A stretch of DNA of 64,000 nucleotides from Paragordius varius (Eukaryota; Animalia; Nematomorpha): NCBI GenBank assembly GCA_964247055.1, contig OZ176051.1, positions 9,238,001-9,302,000 of the forward strand. Reading direction: 5' to 3'. The notes beneath the pieces were generated by a model. That model saw only the letters and a list, made by a program, of their open reading frames with translations. It searched no databases and had not been told where the DNA came from. Positions 11,218 to 62,748 of the stretch are shown here, in pieces (position 1 is the stretch's first letter; each line of letters begins with the position of its first letter). A program made the translations under genes and the position numbers.

Positions 11218-11959
11218 CATGACGTCCCGCTTTTGGCGGGATAGTCCCGATTTTTTACCCTTTATCCCGCTACTTTTTTTAAAAGTCCCAACTTTCAGAT
11301 TCCAGATAAATTTTATGTTACTCATTTAATTTTATTGATATAATTTATTTTAGATTTATAACAAAATGAGCACGAAAAGAGGATGTAAACTCACCGATTA
11401 TGTAAGAAGTTTTCTTATTAAAAAATCTAAAAAGGACTACAGAGTCAAATGTCAAACATGCAACTGCGAATTCACGATTTTGCACTGCGGAAAGAATAAT
11501 ATATCAAGCATTTGGAACCACAGAAACATGAAAGATGTTTTAATACTGCTGCATCATCTTTCAAAATGCCAGATTTTTTTATGGAGACGAAGAAAATGTT
11601 TTAGCATTAAACTTGTATCATTTCACGCTGTTAATACAATTTTTCCTTCAGATCTATAATTTGTACATCACAAGTTATCAGAAAGCTATTCAGCTAGAAC
11701 AAAGGGCGAGGCAATAGTATGTAATGTGCTTTCCCCATATGCATTTTCAGAAATAAAAAATAATTTACAAAAAATTAATTTTATATTTATATAATCTAAC
11801 GCATCTAATCATAAAGAAAGAAAATTATTTCCAACCATCATTAGATATTTTAATTCAGATTCTGGTGTTAAAATTAAAATTTTAGAATTTCTTTACCCGG
11901 TGAAAATCCTAAAATAATTTTTAGTTCTATGCCAAATACTCAAAATCTGCTTTCGTACA

Positions 11960-12125
11960 CCAGAAATACCAACTTTCATAAATAAACCGATAAAATCGCT
12001 TATATCATACAAATTAAATTGCGTCTCTACATCATACTCAAAGAAGAGACGCCGCCCACCCTTAAAAACTGTTGAAAACATTAATGTTAATGGGAAAAGA
12101 AGAAAGGGTCGACCATTCTTTTCTT
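11960..12125 (+). mobile_element. Possible 3' fragment of an RTE-like non-LTR retrotransposon
   Basis: Translates to ...LKTVENINVNGKRRKGRP, resembling the C-terminal GKRxxGRP motif of RTE-type ORFs; short and degenerate. Confidence 0.4.
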
Positions 12126-12129
12126 ATAA

Positions 12130-12768
12130 TCTATATATTTATAAAAATGGAAAATGCTGGCTTTGTGATCTGGTACAGGAAAACCGGTAGACCCATTCAA
12201 ATCCAAACTTCGAATAATTAATGAATGCCCCGACAATAGCTTCGCCCTTTTTTTGAAATAGGCCCCCAGTTCGGGCCCACCCCGTGTGAAAAACGGTTTT
12301 TTTGAAAACAGAAGTCCACAAAAATCGTGTCTTTGAGACAATTTTCTTGAGAACGTGTTGGTCCATTCTATTTCAAATATGATTTTTGTTTACTTATTTT
12401 CGATTGCGCCGAACATAGTCGAGTCACTTTTTTGATTTAGGCCCTCTTTTTACCCGCTCCCCCCGTAAAATGCCATTTTTTTCAAAAAACAAAGTCCACA
12501 AAAATAATTTTTTAAATCTATTTTTCGCCCTAGGTATGAGACCGTAAAAATTTAGTATGGATACGTGTTCCCTGTTAAAAGGCAAAAATTTTAGTCAGGT
12601 GTTTCTTTGATGATAGCTGCTGGGTAAGAAGCTTCCGGCTAAAAACTGATTCCTCATGTAACTTTATGATCTGGTACCGGTAAACCCAATCAAATCCAAA
12701 CTTCGTAACCCCCACCAGATGTCCGAAGGACTTCCTCGGGCTGCGTACCAGCACGAGATTTACGCTAG
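12130..12768 (+). mobile_element. Non-autonomous Helitron (complete termini)
   Basis: A|TCTATATATTTATAAAAATGG 5' end. The 3' end has hairpin CTCGGGCTG-cgtac-CAGCACGAG followed by ...CGCTAG|T. Inserted between A and T with no TSD. The 5' ~320 bp recurs in reverse at ~54240-54560. Confidence 0.8.
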
Positions 12769-13086
12769 TAATAATATAATAATGTACTTAAATCAACGTA
12801 ACATAACATTGTAAACATCGTAAGTTATGGCGGAATTACTTTGTGGTCACAAAACTCCGAATCTGGACTCCTAACATTTTCCACCCATTCTATAATTGAT
12901 ATTATGGCAAAAAATATTTAAAACAAAAATTATAGCACACTGTGCAGACAATACGAATACTATAAATCAAGAGGAGTATAGATAGTTAATCTACCGAGTT
13001 CCAGGTTGGATATATTAGTATTCCTAATTGGCAACAGAGACTATGAGAAACCCAAATTTTGTTGACAGTGTTTACCACGTGTCATA

Positions 13087-13130
13087 GTGTGAGACGCGTT
13101 TCGTCCTTTTTGTGGAATTATCAGCCACAC
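13087..13130 (-). ncRNA. Minimal type-I hammerhead ribozyme, degenerate copy
   Basis: Minus strand: GTGTGG CTGATAA TTCC acaaaaa GGAC GAAA CGCG TC TCACAC. GUC cleavage triplet is intact, but the core reads CUGAUAA (G8>A) and stem II has a mismatch. Confidence 0.75.
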
Positions 13131-13508
13131 ATAATGAACACGGGTAACACTGTCAGTTCAGGAATTGTATATATATTGAGTTTTAGAGAATTAGAAACCG
13201 AATAGAGTCGGGAAAATGAATATAATTGAGCTAAGAGTCCATATTGAACAACCCATTATACTAAAATTCAACCAAATATTATGACTCCTTATAATCCCAA
13301 AGCCAGGATTAAGCTTTTTATAATTAGAAAATCCGAAAATTTTTTGGCGAAGGCGATATCTCATTATAAGTTATAAATCAAGAGGAGTTAAATAGTTAGT
13401 CTCTAAGCTCTATAATATTCATTTTCCCGACTATATTCGGTTTCAAATTCTCTAAAACTCAATATATATACAATTCCTGAACTGACATTGTTAACCCGTG
13501 TTCATTAT

Positions 13509-13552
13509 GTGTGGCTGATGAGTCCACAAAAAGGACGAAACGCGTTTCACAC
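13509..13552 (+). ncRNA. Minimal type-I hammerhead ribozyme
   Basis: GTGTGG CTGATGA GTCC acaaaaa GGAC GAAA CGCG TT TCACAC: complete CUGAUGA/GAAA core, 4-bp stem II, palindromic CGCG stem III, GUU triplet, stem I GTGTGG/TCACAC. Confidence 0.88.
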
Positions 13553-14451
13553 TATGACACATGGTAAACACTGTCAACAAAATTTGGGTTTCCCATAGTC
13601 TCTGTTGCTAATTAGGATATACTAATATATCCAACCTGCAACTCGGTAGACTAATTATCTATAGTCCTCTTGATTTATAACTTATAAGGAGATGGCGCCT
13701 TCGCCTAAAAAATATCTGATTTTCTAATACGAATACTAATTTGGGAGGAAAGCGAGAAGAGTCACAAAAAATATTTTTTATAAATTAGCGAAAGATCTGA
13801 ATCAAAATATTATTGGTGTTGAATGTGCAGCGCATATAACGCTATTCAAACAGCTGCTGACTTGTTACCAGTAGATGTGGAAAATATTGTTGTTAAAAAA
13901 TATTCTTATTTCTATATATATTCTGTACGCGTTAAGATGCTTAAAGAATTTTGTGATAATGCGTAAATACTTGGATACTGTAAAACGCGTTCGTTAGCTC
14001 TTCTGCCAGCTATCGAAAGAATTAAAAATTATCCCTTAAAATCCCATTTTCTATCGTAGGACATATCTCCTACATTTTTAGAAATTTTTTTTGAACTAAA
14101 ACTTTATCAATATGGCTAGAGTTTCTAAAAAATCAAGCTGGTCTTTTTCCAAATTTCATTAAATTTATTGAAGGTGACAAATTATCAACCGAAGTAGCAA
14201 ATGAAGTTAATAATTTAAAATACCAATGTGAAGAGAGGTTAAATAATTTTCTGCCATTTACTATTCGCAATAGTATAAACGAGTTTGAAGAGCAAGGTGC
14301 CACCGCATGATATCAACCTTATAAAAAGGTTTTATACCAACTGCAAAGATTATTTAGAAAGCTGGGTACAATTCGATGATAATTGACATTTTTATTAGAA
14401 TACATTAAAACCAGAATTCACTTGGTAAGATGTTCAAAAATTTTTTTATTA

Positions 14452-15570
14452 CACTGTGTGAAAAAAAATTTTAACAATATTTTTTTCATGAGATAGCTTG
14501 TGGCCAACGTATTCATTTGCCGAAATTTTACGACATAGTTAAAATATTGAGAGAAAATCAAAATCGGGGAAAAAGTGAAAATTACGAATAATAAAGAATA
14601 ATATAAAAAATAATGATAAAAGTTGAGATATTATGGTTTAGTATCATTTTAGCATATTTTTTCAATATAAAATAGCCTAAAATTATATAGTCCGGGTTGC
14701 TATAAAAAATCAGCTCAAAAGATGGCGTTTTTCTTTAAAACACATAAAAGACAAAAAACTTTTTATGAAACTATAAATTATTTTTTTAATTATTTACTAG
14801 CTAAACTCACTATTTAAATCTTAATATTCATATTTTATTCAATATTCTATATCAAAATAAAACTAAAAAATATTGTTTTTTATTTTTTCCTTTTTTTGTC
14901 ATCTTGTTTACGAGTATAAATTTTTTTTACTGTTTTTGGAGTTTTACATAAGTGGAAATTATTAAGTATATTTATGCAAAACAGGATTTAACAGTAGTGG
15001 AAGGTCAACAAAAATCCGTACATATCCCAGTAAAAATATGAATTAGTGTTAAAACAAACTTTTTACAGAATTTGTAAGGATTGTTGGATGATATTCCACT
15101 ACTAAATCTTATCTTGCATAAATTATATGATTTATTCCCACTCATGTAAGATTCCAAAACAAAACAGAATAAATTTTTTATAGACACATAAACCACATGA
15201 CAAAAAATGAAAAAAAAAACAATATTATTTTTATTGTGATATATAAGTTTTTTTACTGAATAAAATATAATGTTTAGATAATTGTAAGTATATCTAGTAA
15301 ATATTAAAAAAATTATTTTAATATAGTTGCATAAATTTTTTTATCCTTTATGTGTGTTAGAGAAAAACGCCATCTTTTAAGATGAGATTTTATAGCAACC
15401 CTAATTATATGATATTAGGCTTTTTATATATTGAAAATATCCTAAAATGATACAAAACCATAATATCTCATTTATTGTTAATTTTTAATTTTTGCCCGAT
15501 TTTATATTAATATTTCGAAAACTAGGGTCAACAAATTAAGTTTTTGCGGCAAATGAATTCGCTGGTCATA
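14452..15570. mobile_element. ~1.2-kb palindromic MITE (CAC...GTG termini, Chapaev/CMC-like), right terminus deleted
   Basis: Starts tta|cactgtgtgaaaaaaa; long inverted arms; homologous to 27011-28219 and 37168-38408. Confidence 0.75.
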
Positions 15571-21639: not shown

Positions 21640-24380
21640 CAGGGGTGGCCACACATTTTTTGTCGCGAGCTTTTTTTTTGGCTTTTTTGTTAAAAAAAGA
21701 GTTCGCGGTCACCCAGAAATATTTATCAAAAAAACTCAATCAACACTTTAAATGATGTATATACCTGCTTTACAGATTAGAGTGACTTGTTTAAATCATT
21801 TTAAAATTGTAATTTTTTTATCTATCAACCAAATACAAAAATAATTTTAATTAAAAGACAACGGGTTATTAACTACCTTAATTTTTTAACCAACTTAAAA
21901 CACTTCAAAATATTTATTTATTAAATTTCTATTATATAAAATTTTACAATATAAAAATTTAAACAATGCATTTGAAATTACAGGGGAGAATACATTATGA
22001 TACAAAAAATAAAAGAAATAAAAATTAGCATTCCAATTTAGAACCATAATTTGAACATAAATAAGAGTACATTAAAATTGTATCAGTTTTAATTCTATCC
22101 ACATATTTTTTAGTAAATCGGATTTTTCCTAAGCGAAAATACAACTCGATAAACATCCATATTTAATAAAGAAAAAAATATTTAAAACGCCCGACTGCGA
22201 AAAAATTCAGAAAGTTTATCTAAATTAGGTTCAAATGAAGTCAAAGCAATTCTCAAACATGATTCTAAATGTTTATTAGTTAATTGTGATCTCTGTTTAG
22301 TTTTGATAGCATTCATATTTGAAAAAGCTGATTCACATAAATATGTGGATCCAAAAAAAGAATTGAATAATGCAGCGGTTTTCCAAATATGGGGGTATTT
22401 ATCTTTATTTATAAATTTATATATATCTGATCCTAATGATTTTAGATGGATATCGCATTTAACATTTATTAATTCCTCTTCCAACTCTGCTAAATTTGGT
22501 ACACCAAGAAAGTGGCTGAGTTTTTGAGCAATATATTCAACATTATTATTATTATTAAATGGGCATGGTAAAAAAATAGCGATGTCTTCAAGTTTATTTA
22601 TAGATGAAAATCGTTTTTCAAAATAATTAATAAGCAGACCAATATCATCTGCATATTTTTCAAAAGAGAGATTCTCTATTTTTTCAGACACCGCTGCCAG
22701 ATTAAAAAAATGTTTTAAATCTCGGTTTTTTAATTATGTTTCTACTACTGTTAGTGTTTCCTTAAAAGATTTTAAAGCACCCATCATATCCATTATTGTT
22801 TTATCTTTTCCTTGTAATTGGATGTTTAATTTATGCAATTTTTCCGTGATCTCGCATAAAAATGCAAGATCAAGCATCCAATCTTGATCTTTCAATTCAG
22901 AGTATGAAAATTTAGAATTCTCTAAAAAAATTTCTATTTGTGGTAAAAGTTGCCTAAATCTAATTAAAAATGCGGCACGACTCAGCCACCTTACATCAGT
23001 ATGTAATAAAAGTTCTCCATATTCCACGCCGCACTCATTTAACAAAATTCGAAATTGGCGGCGGGACAAGCTTTTTGTTCGAATGGTGTTAACAATTTTA
23101 AAACAGGGGTTCATTACATGATGGTATTTTGAAACTTTTGAACATAAAACTTGATTATGGATTATACAATGGTAATCAATGAACTTGGGAAATGCACTGT
23201 GATTTTTACATAAAGCGATAAAGCCGTTGTTAACGCCAATCATAGCTGGAGCTCCATCAGTAGTTATAGATGCGAGTTTTACGATGGGAAGTTTCGTATC
23301 TGTGATAAATTTATAAAAAGAATCAAAAATATCCTGCCCTCTGGTTCGTTCGTGGAGAGGTATTATAGTTAATAATTCCTCCTTTGCAGATAAATCACTA
23401 AATATCATACGAATAAAAATGAATAATTGGGCGATTCCAACATAATCGGTGGACTCATCGAGTTGCAAGGAAAAAAAATACAGTTATTAATATTTTCATG
23501 TAAAATTTCATCAAGATTATTACTAATATCTTCAGCCCTGCGCATAACGGTATTTCTCGATAAGCTTATGCTTTTAATAGCTGTCATAATATTATTTTTG
23601 TTATCAAAATTTTCAAATAAAATATCACAAGCGCTAATAAAGGCTTCTTTAAATATTTCACCATCTTGGAATGGCTTATTGTTTCGAATGAGTATTTCCG
23701 CTACCTTGAATGAAGCAATCGTAGCATTTTTATACTCTTTGTTGTATTTAAGTATGCTATTTTGTGAGGCGGATAATTGTTCTTTTAATTCCTTTACTTT
23801 AATGTTGCGTTCTTGAGTTTGTAAGGGGTAGTTTTTGGAGTAATGTGGATGCAGAGATCTATAATGTCTTTCAATATTTGACTTTTTGGGCAAAGCAACA
23901 GTACTATTGCATATTAGACAGGTGCATGTTTCATTTATCATAATAAAAAAGTATTCATGCTCCCAATCTTTCTTGTATCTGTACAACTTTTTTTGGCTCA
24001 TTCTAAAATATAAGTTTTAAAAACCTACTTTTGGTGTATCAAATCAAATCTAACTTCACGATTATGCTTCTGATTTATGAATAAGCTTTGCTCAAAGTTT
24101 TGATATATTCAAGGGAAATGACTGATTTTAAATTTTAATGCAAATGCTCCAAAACATATGAATTATAATTTATAAAATAATTTTTTTACACCCTTTTCTT
24201 AGACGTTTTTTTTTAATTTAAACCGTATTTTTTTGTATTTTAAATTTAAATTCGCTCAGAAGTAGCCAACTATCCGAAAAAAATCAATAAAATTTTTTTA
24301 AAAAAAATATTTTCAGGCGGTCACTTTTTGAATTGTCGCGGTCACGAAAGTGACCGCGGTCACCTCGTTGGCCACCCCTG
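21640..24380 (-). mobile_element. Near-intact Buster/Charlie-type hAT transposon (SPIN/GTF2IRD2-like transposase)
   Basis: TIRs CAGGGGTGGCCA / TGGCCACCCCTG; perfect 8-bp TSD ATATATAT (nnnTAnnn); 2741 bp. Confidence 0.95.
22182..24001 (-). pseudogene. hAT-Buster transposase (~600 aa) with one frameshift and one in-frame stop
   Basis: Three ORFs join up: BED-like CLIC...NIERHY; LDESTD, SITTDGAPAM, HCIIH, VRWLSR (DDE); FGSTYLCESAFS.M..IK...RS.LT (dimerisation). Frameshift in a T8 run at ~23470; TAA at 22734-22736, after which the frame continues (LKNRDLKHF...). Confidence 0.92.
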
Positions 24381-57131: not shown

Positions 57132-58954
57132 ATGAACACAAAAAGAGGCTGGAAATTCAATGATAAATTAATGAAAGATTTTCCTTGCATTAAAAAAACG
57201 AAGAATGAATCGTCTGTTAAATGTCTATGCGATGGGGAATTCACCCTGGCACATGGCGGCAAACATGACATAAAAGCATATTGATACACAGAAACATCAA
57301 AAATGTTTAATTATAACGGCATCATCTCACAAGATGAGCGATTTTTTTCGAAAAACCGCTTTTGGAGAGGAAGAAAAGAATTTAGCACTTGCTGAGGGCC
57401 TGTTTTCCTTTCACGCCTTAAATCATTGCCATTCATTTCGTTCAATGGATTGTACCTCACAGGTTATTCGCACGTTATTCAATAAAAAATTTACATGTGC
57501 CCGTACAAAGGCTGAAGCCATTGTGTGCAATGTTTTTTCGCCACATGCTTTTTCTGAAATACAAAAAAATTTGCTAAAAATTAATTTCTTTTCCCTATAC
57601 TCTGATGCTTCAAATCACCATGAAACAAAATTATTTCCTACTTTTCATCCAGAAACCGGAGTAAAAATTAAAATTTTAGATTTAATTTCCCTACCCGGTG
57701 AAAATTCTGAAATAATATTTACTTCAATAATGCATATTCTAGAAAAAAATAATTTAAAAGACAAAATTATCGCATATTGCGCTGACAACACCTATACGAA
57801 CTTTGGTGGAAAAGCAAGGAGAGGAACAAAAAATATTTTTCATAAATTAACAGATAATCTCAATCAAAACATTATTGGCGTTGGATGTGCAGCGCATATA
57901 ATACACAACGCTATTCAAACAGCTGCTGATTTGTTACCCTTAGATGTGGAAAATATAGTTGTTAAAATATATTCCTATTTTTATATATACACGGTGCGTG
58001 TTGAAACGCTTCTTGGATATAGTAAAACTCGTTGGTTAGCTTTTATGCCAGCTATCGAAAGAATTTTAAAAATATATGATCGATCCTTTAATATCCTATT
58101 TTTTATCACAGGACAAATGTCCTACAACTTTAAAAAAGTTTTTTGAAAGTGATTCTTCAAAAATATGGTTAGAATTCTTACATAATCAAGCTTCTCTCTT
58201 TCAAAATGTTATTAAATTTATTGAAGGTGACAAAATTTCGGCTGTCGAAGTAGCCAATGAAGTTAGTAACCTGAAATTCTAATGTCAAGAACGGTTAGAA
58301 AATAATTTTATTCCATTAACCATCCGCAATACAATAAATAATTTAGAAAAACAAGGCTTAATAAATCGCCAAGATATCCTGTACCATATAAAAATGTTTT
58401 ATACAAACTGTAAAGATTATTTGGAAGACTGGACGACGCAATTCAATGAAATTGATCATTTTCATTGGATAACATTAAAATCAGAATTTAATTGGTGCGA
58501 TGTTTAAAAATCATTTGATTATATCTGCTCCAAAAAATTCTCAAAAAGTGATCTTTCAGAAAATGATCTTTTTTCTGAAGTATCATTAGTTAAAAGATAT
58601 ATTAATAATGAAAAACTTAAATTATGGACTAAAGAAAAATATACAGTAGAAAAGAAATGGTTGGAAATATTTCATCATTTTGAAGTCAACTATATTACAT
58701 ACAATAATATTTTAAAAATTGTGGAATTCGCACTATCTTTACCTGGAACCAACGCTGCTACTGAGCGCGTTTTTTCCACAGTAAATCAGGTGTGGACATC
58801 GGAAAAATCAAATGTAAATGTTGAAACTTTGAAGGCCGTTTTATCTGTCAAATATAATTTGACAAATTCTTGTGAAGACTTCTACAATATTTTAAAAAAT
58901 GATGACAATCTGCTAAAACGCATTCACTCAAACAAAAAATATACCAAAGAATAA
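57132..58954 (+). pseudogene. hAT transposase, frameshifted with stops
   Basis: MNTKRG...KC.C...F..HGGK.DI (BED-like), YSDASNH, YCADNT.TNFGG, GCAAHIIHN, KTRWL, LSLPGTNAATERVFS; several frameshifts and stops. Confidence 0.9.
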
Positions 58955-60476: not shown

Positions 60477-62748
60477 TAGAGTGACCAGACGTCCCGCTTT
60501 TCACTTTGTCCAGCGTCCCGCTACGTTTTTAAAATTTCCCGCTTTTTCACGATTATATAAGAAAATTTTTTTTTAAATACATTTAAATTTTTTATAAAAT
60601 TTTTTTTTATCAGTTTAAATTTTTTATCATTAGTTATCTTCAAAATCATCAATTTTATACAAAAAATTTTATTTTTAAATAAAAATTATTTATTTTTTTC
60701 GAATTTAAATCATATGATTATACTCCTCGCTTCCTACTCCTACTGCCAACATTATCAAAAAGACAAATTAATACCACAAATCGGCAGCTAATACGTTTAC
60801 TCCAGAAAATTAGGGTAATATGATATTATACTAAGTTAAAAAATATGAGTACAAAAAGAGGTTTAAATTCAACGATGAATTAAAGAAAAAATTTCCTTTT
60901 ATCAAAAAAACGAAGAATGAATCATTTGTTAAATGTTCATTATGCGAGGGGGAATTCACCCTAGCACATGGCGGCAAGCATGATATTACAAAGCATATGG
61001 AAACACAGAAACATAAAATGTTGATATGGCGGTATTATCTTACAAAACGAGCGATTTTTATCAAAAAAACCGCTTTTGGAGAGGAAGAAAAGAATTTGGC
61101 ACTAGCCGAAGGCGTTTTATCTTTTTACGCCGTTAATCACAATCATTGATTTAGATCTATGGATTGTATCTCACAGGTTATTCGTACCCTATTCAATAAA
61201 AAATTTACATGTGCCCGTACAAAGGCTGAAGCCATTGTATGTAATGTCCTTTCGCCGCATGCATTTTCTGAAATACAAAAATATTTGCTGAGGAAACAAT
61301 ATTATTTTCCACTTTAATAAGATATTTTGATCCAGAAACTGGAGTAAAAATAATTTTAGATTTTATTTATCTACCCGGTGAAAATTCCGATATAATTTTT
61401 ACTTCAATAATAAATATAGAAAAAAATAATTTAAAAGTCAAAATCATCGCATATTGGCTGACAACACCAATACGAACTTTAGTGGAAAAGCAAGGAGGGG
61501 AACAAAAAATATTTTTCATAAATTAGCAGATAATCTTAATCAAAACATTATTGGCGTTGGGTGTGCAGCGCTATTACAAAACGCTAATCAAAATGTAGTT
61601 GTTGAAGTATATTCCTATTTTTATATATACACGGTGAATTCTGTGAAAATGCAGAAGTTCGAATGTCAAAAATGCTTGGATATTGAAAAACTAGTTGGTT
61701 GCTCTTCTGCCAGCTATCGAAGGAATTTTAAAAATGTATGATCCTTTAAAATCCTATTTTTTATCACAGGACAAATGTCCTACAACTTTGGAAAAGTTTT
61801 TTGAAAGTGATTCTTCAAAAATATGGTTAGAATTCTTACATCAAGCTTCTCTCTTTCAAAATGTTATTAAATTGATAGAAGGAGAATTTCGGCAATCGAA
61901 GTAGCCAATGAAGTTAGTAACCTAAAATTCCAATCTTAAGAAAGGTTAGAAAATAATTTTATACCATTAACCATCGGCAATATTATAAATAATTTTAAAA
62001 AAACTAGGCTTAATAAATCGTCAAAATATCCTGTACTATATAAAAATTTATACAAACTGTAAAGATATTTGGAAGACTGGACGGTGCAATTTAATTAAAT
62101 TGATCATTTTCATTGGATAACATTCAAACCAGAATTTAATTGGTGCGATGTTCAAAAATCATTTGATTACAACTGCATCTCCCAAAAATTCCCTAAAATC
62201 AATCTTTCAGAAAATGATCTTTTTTCTGAAGAATCATTAGTTAAAAAATATATAAATAAAAAACTTAAATTATGGACTAAGAAAAAATACAGTAGAAAAA
62301 TAATGGTTAGAAATATTTCATCATTTTGAAACAAACTATGTTCCATTAATATTATAAAAATGGTGGAATTGCACAATCTTTACCTGGAACCAACGCTGCT
62401 ACTGAGCGCTTTTTTTTCCACAGTAAATCAGGTGTGGACATCGGTAAAATCAAATTTAAATGTGGAAACTTTAAAGGCCATTTTATGTGTCAAATATAAT
62501 TTGACAAATTCTTGTGAAGACTTCTACAATATTTTAAAAAATGATGACAATCTGCTAAAACGCATTCACTCAAATAAAAAATATACCAAAGAATATGTTT
62601 TTTTATATTTATAATGTATTTGTGTTAAAAATAAATAAGTATTAAAATAAATTTTTGTATAAAATTTTTTGGTGGTAACCCTTCCCCCCCATGCCCCCCC
62701 TTTTTCAGATTTGTCCCGCTTTTTTCTTCAAAAAATCTGGTCACCCTA
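60477..62748 (+). mobile_element. Second Blackjack-like hAT copy, 2272 bp, transposase pseudogene ~60846-62600
   Basis: TAGAGTGACCAGA / TCTGGTCACCCTA; near-TSD TGTATGTG / GTTATGTG; colinear with 56640-59972 except for the antisense block. Confidence 0.9.

Follow-up and report, generated by a model that had tools for sequence, protein, structure and literature searches.

Which kind of element carried two hammerhead-like motifs, on opposite strands, into a decayed transposase gene of Paragordius varius? The locus lies in a 64-kb stretch of DNA, referred to here as the window, in which no ORF reaches 300 aa and four ORFs have at least 170 aa. An earlier sequence-only reading had assigned the insertion to a non-autonomous family of the Penelope-like or retrozyme kind. 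The limits of the insertion, its internal structure, its relatives across the genome and the candidate enzymes that could have moved it were analyzed in turn. The features of the locus are collected in Table 1.

The host of the insertion is interrupted by stops and frameshifts and is broken twice, by a repeat of ~660 bp at 12127-12789 and by the insertion itself. Pfam recognised hAT in none of nine stop-free pieces of the host, and an Atlas search with a 44-aa peptide from the flank gave no match; the same peptide has at least 150 matches in the genome. Since the decayed pieces alone yield nothing, the host was identified as a hAT remnant through a collinear paralog in the same window (57334-58146 and 58661-58954). 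This paralog is a better-preserved copy of the host family, consisting of a 270-aa ORF and a 97-aa ORF, the latter with a hAT dimerisation domain (Dimer_Tnp_hAT, PF05699, 27.8 bits against a cut-off of 21.4). The host reads ...IIAHCADNTNT to the left of the insertion and FGRKARRVTKNIFYKLAKDLNQNIIGVECAAHI to the right, the paralog carries the uninterrupted block YCADNTYTNFGGKARRGTKNIF...GVGCAAHIIHN, and a block of the form ...CADNT.TNFGG...C.AHI... is common to both. Thus, the earlier placement of the insertion in the ADNT region of a dead hAT transposase is borne out by the paralog.

The insert is bracketed by a 13-nt direct repeat, AATACGAATACTA. In a DNA alignment the two repeat copies fall on one and the same stretch of the paralog, and because the paralog has this stretch only once, the repeat represents a true target-site duplication (TSD) and the paralog preserves the empty site. 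The final two bases of the repeat (TA) possibly derive from the element, which would give a TSD of 11-13 bp; as TA is common to target and element, the limits of the insertion are good to ±2 bases. A perfect 12-bp TSD around a 764-bp insert had been read from the sequence. The duplication stands, with both sizes corrected (13 nt and 763 bp). Within the insertion the largest frame, and the sole ORF of at least 50 aa, has 57 aa. A query with the left flank, used in the search for an empty site, mostly matched the unrelated, high-copy 660-bp repeat and was set aside.

Table 1. Features of the insertion, of its host and of the empty target site (positions in the window).
Feature	Position	Strand	Basis
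Host: decayed hAT transposase remnant with stops and frameshifts; 3' limit approximate	11354-14600	+	Frame pieces; collinear paralog
Left TSD copy, AATACGAATACTA	12950-12962		Direct repeat; aligned to paralog 57787-57799
Whole insertion, 763 bp	12963-13725		Without ORF; 34% GC against 28% in the window
Antisense arm, 443 nt: unit 380-411, then full unit 1-411 (1.08 units)	12961-13403	-	BLAST map against the unit; direct repeat with spacing of 411
Type I hammerhead, antisense arm	13074-13145	-	Core 13130-13087; HH9 24.7 bits
Sense arm, unit 135-411, 5'-truncated	13401-13679	+	93.5% identical to the other arm
Type I hammerhead, sense copy, with extended helix I	13494-13565	+	Core 13509-13552; HH9 33.9 bits
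Tail: first ~46-49 nt of the next unit past position 411	13680-13725	+	Inverted repeat; aligns to internal copy 13326-13371
Right TSD copy	13726-13738		Direct repeat; same paralog bases 57787-57799
Empty target site in the paralogous hAT copy, same window	57787-57799	+	DNA alignment

Several neighbours of the insertion were recorded along the way. A third, weaker copy of the hAT host family lies near 61478-61579, and the family comprises hundreds of genomic copies. The repeat at 12127-12789 has 2264 candidate genomic matches at a first look and is unrelated to the hammerhead element; at other places it is arranged in tandem with a ~510-bp period (for example G000:C7:6369988-6373514 and C8:608540-611192), and Rfam detected no ribozyme in it. 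On the minus strand at 22734-24001, two overlapping ORFs of 244 and 198 aa carry the motifs DESTD..., TTDGAPAM... and HCIIHN, and look like a second, different transposase gene of hAT type (DUF4371-like).

The insert is built from an ORF-less unit of 411 nt, one period of which is seen at 12961-13371 as a direct repeat with this spacing. Numbering of the unit follows the sense of the hammerhead. The stretch 12961-13237 is complementary to 13401-13679 in three collinear blocks with 93-95% complementarity. Inverted arms of ~280 bp had been described before; the arms were recovered, and the left part was found to span more than one unit. The outer end of the antisense arm falls exactly at unit position 411 and carries no tail. 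The sense arm together with its tail measures 326 nt, and the tail is present at the right end of the insertion only. The two arms thus have their 3' ends directed outwards and their 5' ends joined in the centre. A read-through transcript would fold into a long hairpin, as had been suggested earlier: the predicted energy of the insertion hairpin is -457.7 kcal/mol (z -41). Unit position 411, the tail-less terminus, lies in the loop of a small predicted hairpin (CUCC...GGAG) that is kept in five copies, and a second predicted hairpin (UGGC...GCCA) follows it in the tail; neither shows covariation.

Do the two motifs represent genuine hammerheads? A search for the core pattern with up to three mismatches found these two sites only in the 64-kb window, and 100 shuffles of the sequence yielded none. 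In Rfam, no family gave a match in the window at gathering thresholds. A relaxed Rfam search matched both motifs over their full length to Hammerhead_HH9 with E values of 1.4e-6 (plus copy) and 1.3e-3 (minus copy), at scores below the gathering score of 52. The best copy of the family in the whole genome reaches 38.4 bits and likewise remains under this score. These low scores are due to the near absence of helix III. The motif has a helix I of 6 bp, extendable to ~17 bp with an internal loop, a helix II of 4 bp, and a helix III (palindromic, ACGCGU) in which 1-2 bp close a small palindromic loop. The description as a minimal hammerhead therefore holds for helix III, but not for helices I and II, which have the sizes usual in animals; the min-HHR of Penelope pLTRs has a helix II of 7-8 bp and a shorter helix I (PMC4209133). 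Helix III would need a second copy, and pairing of the self-complementary ACGCGU between two copies is possible on paper. Minimum-energy co-folding of two ribozyme copies produced domain-swapped duplexes, uninformative on the hammerhead fold, and was discarded.

The positions of both hammerheads and the different defect in each, as given by the sequence-only reading, were reproduced. The plus copy retains the complete core, with CUGAUGA, GAAA and an NUH triplet that can be cleaved, and its predicted cleavage site follows U13546. Its triplet is GUU where the family has GUC; GUU obeys the NUH rule, so this copy, which had been regarded as defective, departs from the family in a way that is not necessarily lethal. 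The minus copy, in which the cut would fall between 13093 and 13092, fails at G8: the G8>A change and a U/C mismatch in helix II are confirmed, and both are private to it. Compared with the majority of other copies, the arms differ at 13 and 11 sites, of which 4 are shared and 9 and 7 are private. Since most of these differences, the ribozyme defects among them, are private to an arm, the copy at 12963-13725 is, judged from its sequence, old and has decayed after insertion by ~3% per arm. With its two motifs on opposite strands and both mutated, it should be unable to process itself.

BLAST with the element yields 160 matches in the 110.6-Mb genome to which it belongs. A 31-nt core pattern occurs perfectly 37 times, at dozens of loci, and the reversed control pattern not once. 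Among 24 arms from 18 loci, most carry the consensus GUGUG(G/A) CUGAUGA GUCC-loop-GGAC GAAA CGCG UC, followed by UCACAC. The earlier expectation that related copies would conserve the core is thus matched by the genome; CUGAUGA, GAAA and GUC are intact in most of the sampled copies, for example in the one at C10:2883620-2883985. Over 21 copies, pairing holds in 96.3% of the helix cells and drops to 19-48% if the partners are slid. The helices show no significant covariation: a single compensatory pair was seen (GUCU/AGAC, in L011), and 153 of 500 shuffles reach as much.

Within the close family the hammerhead block shows no excess conservation (0.95, with neighbours at 0.94-0.96), and the argument for constraint was consequently based on a diverged subfamily. 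This subfamily is 71-79% identical to the query and retains a perfect core in at least 11 copies. At 24% divergence, chance survival of the 24 fixed bases is expected in about 1 of 700 copies. Hence, the ribozyme is the most constrained part of the lineage. Members of the diverged subfamily, for example C5:11946705-11947235 and C11:622540-623281, begin to match at query position 102 and thus do not share the last ~100 nt of the unit, beside the start site of reverse transcription. The subfamily may have a different partner enzyme.

The other copies also record how the element inserts. TSDs range from 10 to 15 bp over the loci (L002, 12-15 bp; L004, 15 bp; L005, 12 bp; L006, 11 bp; L009, 13 bp; L011, 13 bp; L012, 12 bp; L020, 12 bp). 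Duplicates of a single event were recognised by shared flanks (L005-L008 with L021, and L009 with L012). All nine independent insertions in which both ends are readable have exactly one tail: one end falls at position 411 (or 410) of the unit and the other bears a tail of ~46-58 nt, without exception. Accordingly there are two 3' termini, which follow the predicted cut site at distances of 131 and ~180 nt. Copies differ in the length of their arms and in their inner breakpoints, and some consist of a single 5'-truncated arm. In the unit maps of the 18 loci, arms of 1.08-1.35 units cross the junction from position 411 to position 1 and meet no coding sequence, which argues that the element is truly ORF-less and not a truncated coding element. 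What these copies document is a retro-type insertion with a 3' end fixed in two variants, a variable 5' end, outward-directed arms, a TSD and a template longer than one unit.

Five of the copies, L005, L006, L007, L008 and L021 (C10:2883xxx, C1:11675xxx, C6:7863xxx, C2:5641xxx and C2:11500xxx), share the same flank and the same TSD. They go back to one insertion, which was subsequently multiplied as part of a segmental duplication or larger repeat. A comparable pair, L009 and L012, lies on C1.

Taken together, the insertion is very probably an old and inactive copy of a 411-nt, protein-less retroelement with a type I hammerhead, copied in trans by the reverse transcriptase (RT) and GIY-YIG endonuclease of a Penelope-like element (PLE). 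The assignment to a non-autonomous Penelope-like or retrozyme kind with inverted arms and a TSD is in keeping with the family, the tails, the TSDs and the layout of PLEs. The likeliest alternative is a classical non-LTR retrozyme, in which tandem repeats are transcribed, the hammerhead cuts the transcript, and the resulting 411-nt circular RNAs are copied in rolling-circle fashion by any RT. The sizes of helices I and II and the short palindromic helix III are indeed of the usual animal type, a unit of 411 nt at 34% GC falls within the published range of 150-450 nt and low GC (PMC7229834), and arms of 1.08-1.35 units require a multimeric or circular template. However, tandem hammerhead arrays, which the sequence-only reading had proposed to look for by genome-wide BLAST, were not seen. 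Among the 37 perfect cores and 42 model hits, the part of the candidates that was scored, no two hammerheads lie on the same strand within 1 kb, every close pair being arranged minus-then-plus and facing outwards; and none of the sampled loci holds two full tandem units, the maximum being 1.35. Moreover, the ends fall at the two fixed sites past the cut and not at the cut site itself, and fixed two-site ends, a one-sided tail and an inverted arm are hallmarks of PLEs (PMC8557442, PMC11167929). We therefore regard a classical tandem retrozyme as unlikely.

Long inverted arms, a flanking duplication and an insert that folds as a whole into a hairpin would also be expected of a DNA transposon of the fold-back or MITE-like kind, whose ~280-bp terminal inverted repeats happen to hold a hammerhead-like sequence. 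This origin is highly improbable, because the ends are asymmetric, one of them with the 46-58 nt tail, the arm lengths and inner breakpoints vary, single-arm 5'-truncated copies occur beside copies of more than one unit, and the TSD is variable in length. Lastly, the very stable predicted hairpin might be taken to indicate a takeover by the host, whether to supply dsRNA or small RNA for silencing of the family or to provide a ribozyme directed at a host transcript, but with the insert lying in a dead transposon, its ribozymes privately damaged and its arms drifted by ~3% each, there is hardly any likelihood of this.

For a PLE-dependent retroelement, a source of enzyme should be present in the genome. 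Matches to GIY-YIG led to an open frame of 787 aa with RT and GIY-YIG domains at G000:C1:4914348-4916708 (minus strand). The full protein gave no hit in Pfam, a fragment of it matches GIY-YIG, and its nearest Atlas clusters are annotated RVT_1 and GIY-YIG. This PLE has an inverted 5'-truncated copy at its 5' end, and near-identical copies (95-99%) on C6, C5 and C3 suggest that the lineage was recently active. A protein search revealed at least four divergent PLE lineages, at 65-67%, 39-41% and 31-36% identity. Several of them keep frames of 650-893 aa open, the longest in several lineages being 788-893 aa, and their copies are often arranged as minus/plus head-to-head pairs, in the same geometry as the ribozyme element. 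Other lineages, 31-41% identical to the first, were located at C7:2026537-2028615, C10:2825758-2827611, C5:10196475-10197851 and C1:4843810-4845603, and these are candidate sources of the enzyme mobilising the hammerhead family. A PLE copy is also placed at C5:11236517-11240154.

The 411-nt unit and the 787-aa PLE lineage, the one lineage read in this comparison, share no nucleotide similarity beyond chance by BLAST; a 29-nt AT-rich match in L049 was inspected and dismissed. In and around the same lineage, neither Rfam nor a regular expression found a hammerhead. An RT and GIY-YIG ORF adjacent to the element had been anticipated, and no copy of the family lies within kilobases of a PLE ORF.

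How does the element compare with known systems? Non-autonomous pLTR insertions of PLEs (PMC8557442, PMC4209133, bioRxiv 10.64898/2026.07.22.740005) offer a closely similar layout. They are described as partly tandem (pLTRs); in many of them the 5' end bears an inverted, 5'-truncated copy, and a tail is found on one side only (PMC8557442). Like the present family, they also have TSDs of variable length in AT-rich DNA and a hammerhead within the repeat. A study of 2014 reported pairs of hammerheads that lie on opposite strands, separated by 100-700 bp (PMC4209133). The present family differs from these insertions in three respects: the tail is longer (~46-58 nt instead of 30-40 nt), the hammerhead has a 6-bp helix I and a 4-bp helix II in place of the min-HHR, and a sequence link to an autonomous PLE was not found with the one lineage compared. 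With metazoan non-LTR retrozymes (PMC7229834) the family has in common the 6-bp helix I, the 4-bp helix II, the short palindromic helix III, the unit of a few hundred nucleotides, the low GC content and the lack of an ORF. Unlike in these retrozymes, the copies are dispersed and do not exceed 1.35 tandem units, an inverted arm is present, and no array was seen in which each unit has its own ribozyme. A 2026 preprint considers animal retrozymes to be non-autonomous derivatives of PLEs (bioRxiv 10.64898/2026.07.22.740005).

At the level of the ribozyme, the Rfam family Hammerhead_HH9 (RF02275, clan CL00010) is matched over its full length (1-77): the core is identical, loop 2 is similarly rich in A, and helix I is long and interrupted in both. 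The difference lies in helix III, which here has only 2 bp around a 2-nt loop and is reflected in the scores under 52. At the level of integration, the Poseidon PLE of Anolis carolinensis (PMC11167929) resembles the present element in its two discrete 3' termini downstream of the hammerhead and in the apparent use of both target strands as primers. The purified Anolis enzyme cuts and extends both strands from two internal RNA start sites whose spacing equals the tail (PMC11167929). In Anolis, however, the start sites lie ~85-92 nt past the cut and inside the ORF, whereas those of the present family are non-coding and lie farther from the cut, as given above.

On this basis, a route can be proposed by which the 411-nt element would be copied by a PLE. 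The enzyme, acting in trans, would nick both DNA strands 10-15 bp apart in AT-rich DNA, and each nick would prime reverse transcription at one of the two internal start sites of an RNA longer than one unit, which might be multimeric or circular. Head-to-head joining of the two cDNAs would account for the inverted arms, for the tail at one end only and for the TSD. The role of the hammerhead is presumably to process the multimeric transcripts that source copies give rise to, perhaps assisted by protein as in Anolis. A transcript reading through the copy at 12963-13725 would instead fold into a hairpin of ~280 bp. The biochemical steps of this route are modelled on published work with PLEs (PMC11167929, PMC8557442).

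The strict rule of one tail per insertion is the feature that goes beyond this scheme. If each strand chose its start site independently, a result of one end of each kind in nine of nine insertions would have a probability of at most ~0.002. We tentatively propose that the priming of the two strands is coupled and asymmetric, perhaps through an enzyme dimer that holds two RNAs in different registers, and that the PLE route mobilises an element whose hammerhead is of the usual animal (retrozyme) type instead of the min-HHR, with templates that exceed one unit and may be circular. The family would then amount to a natural archive of Penelope-type integration. We hold this combined proposal to be possible and somewhat doubtful: in the published in vitro system (PMC11167929) no such coupling of start sites was seen, the Anolis enzyme showing no strand difference in start site where the present family has exactly one of each per insertion.

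The kind of element found here has already been described. The locus itself, an inactive copy within a transposon that is likewise dead, gives no hint of acting on a host gene. Further work might be worthwhile only on the strict one-tail rule. As a family, by virtue of its TSDs, the empty site, the two termini and the one-tail rule, it provides a compact example linking retrozyme-type hammerheads to Penelope-style integration. It could hence help to test models of PLE retrotransposition as well as the proposal that animal retrozymes derive from PLEs.
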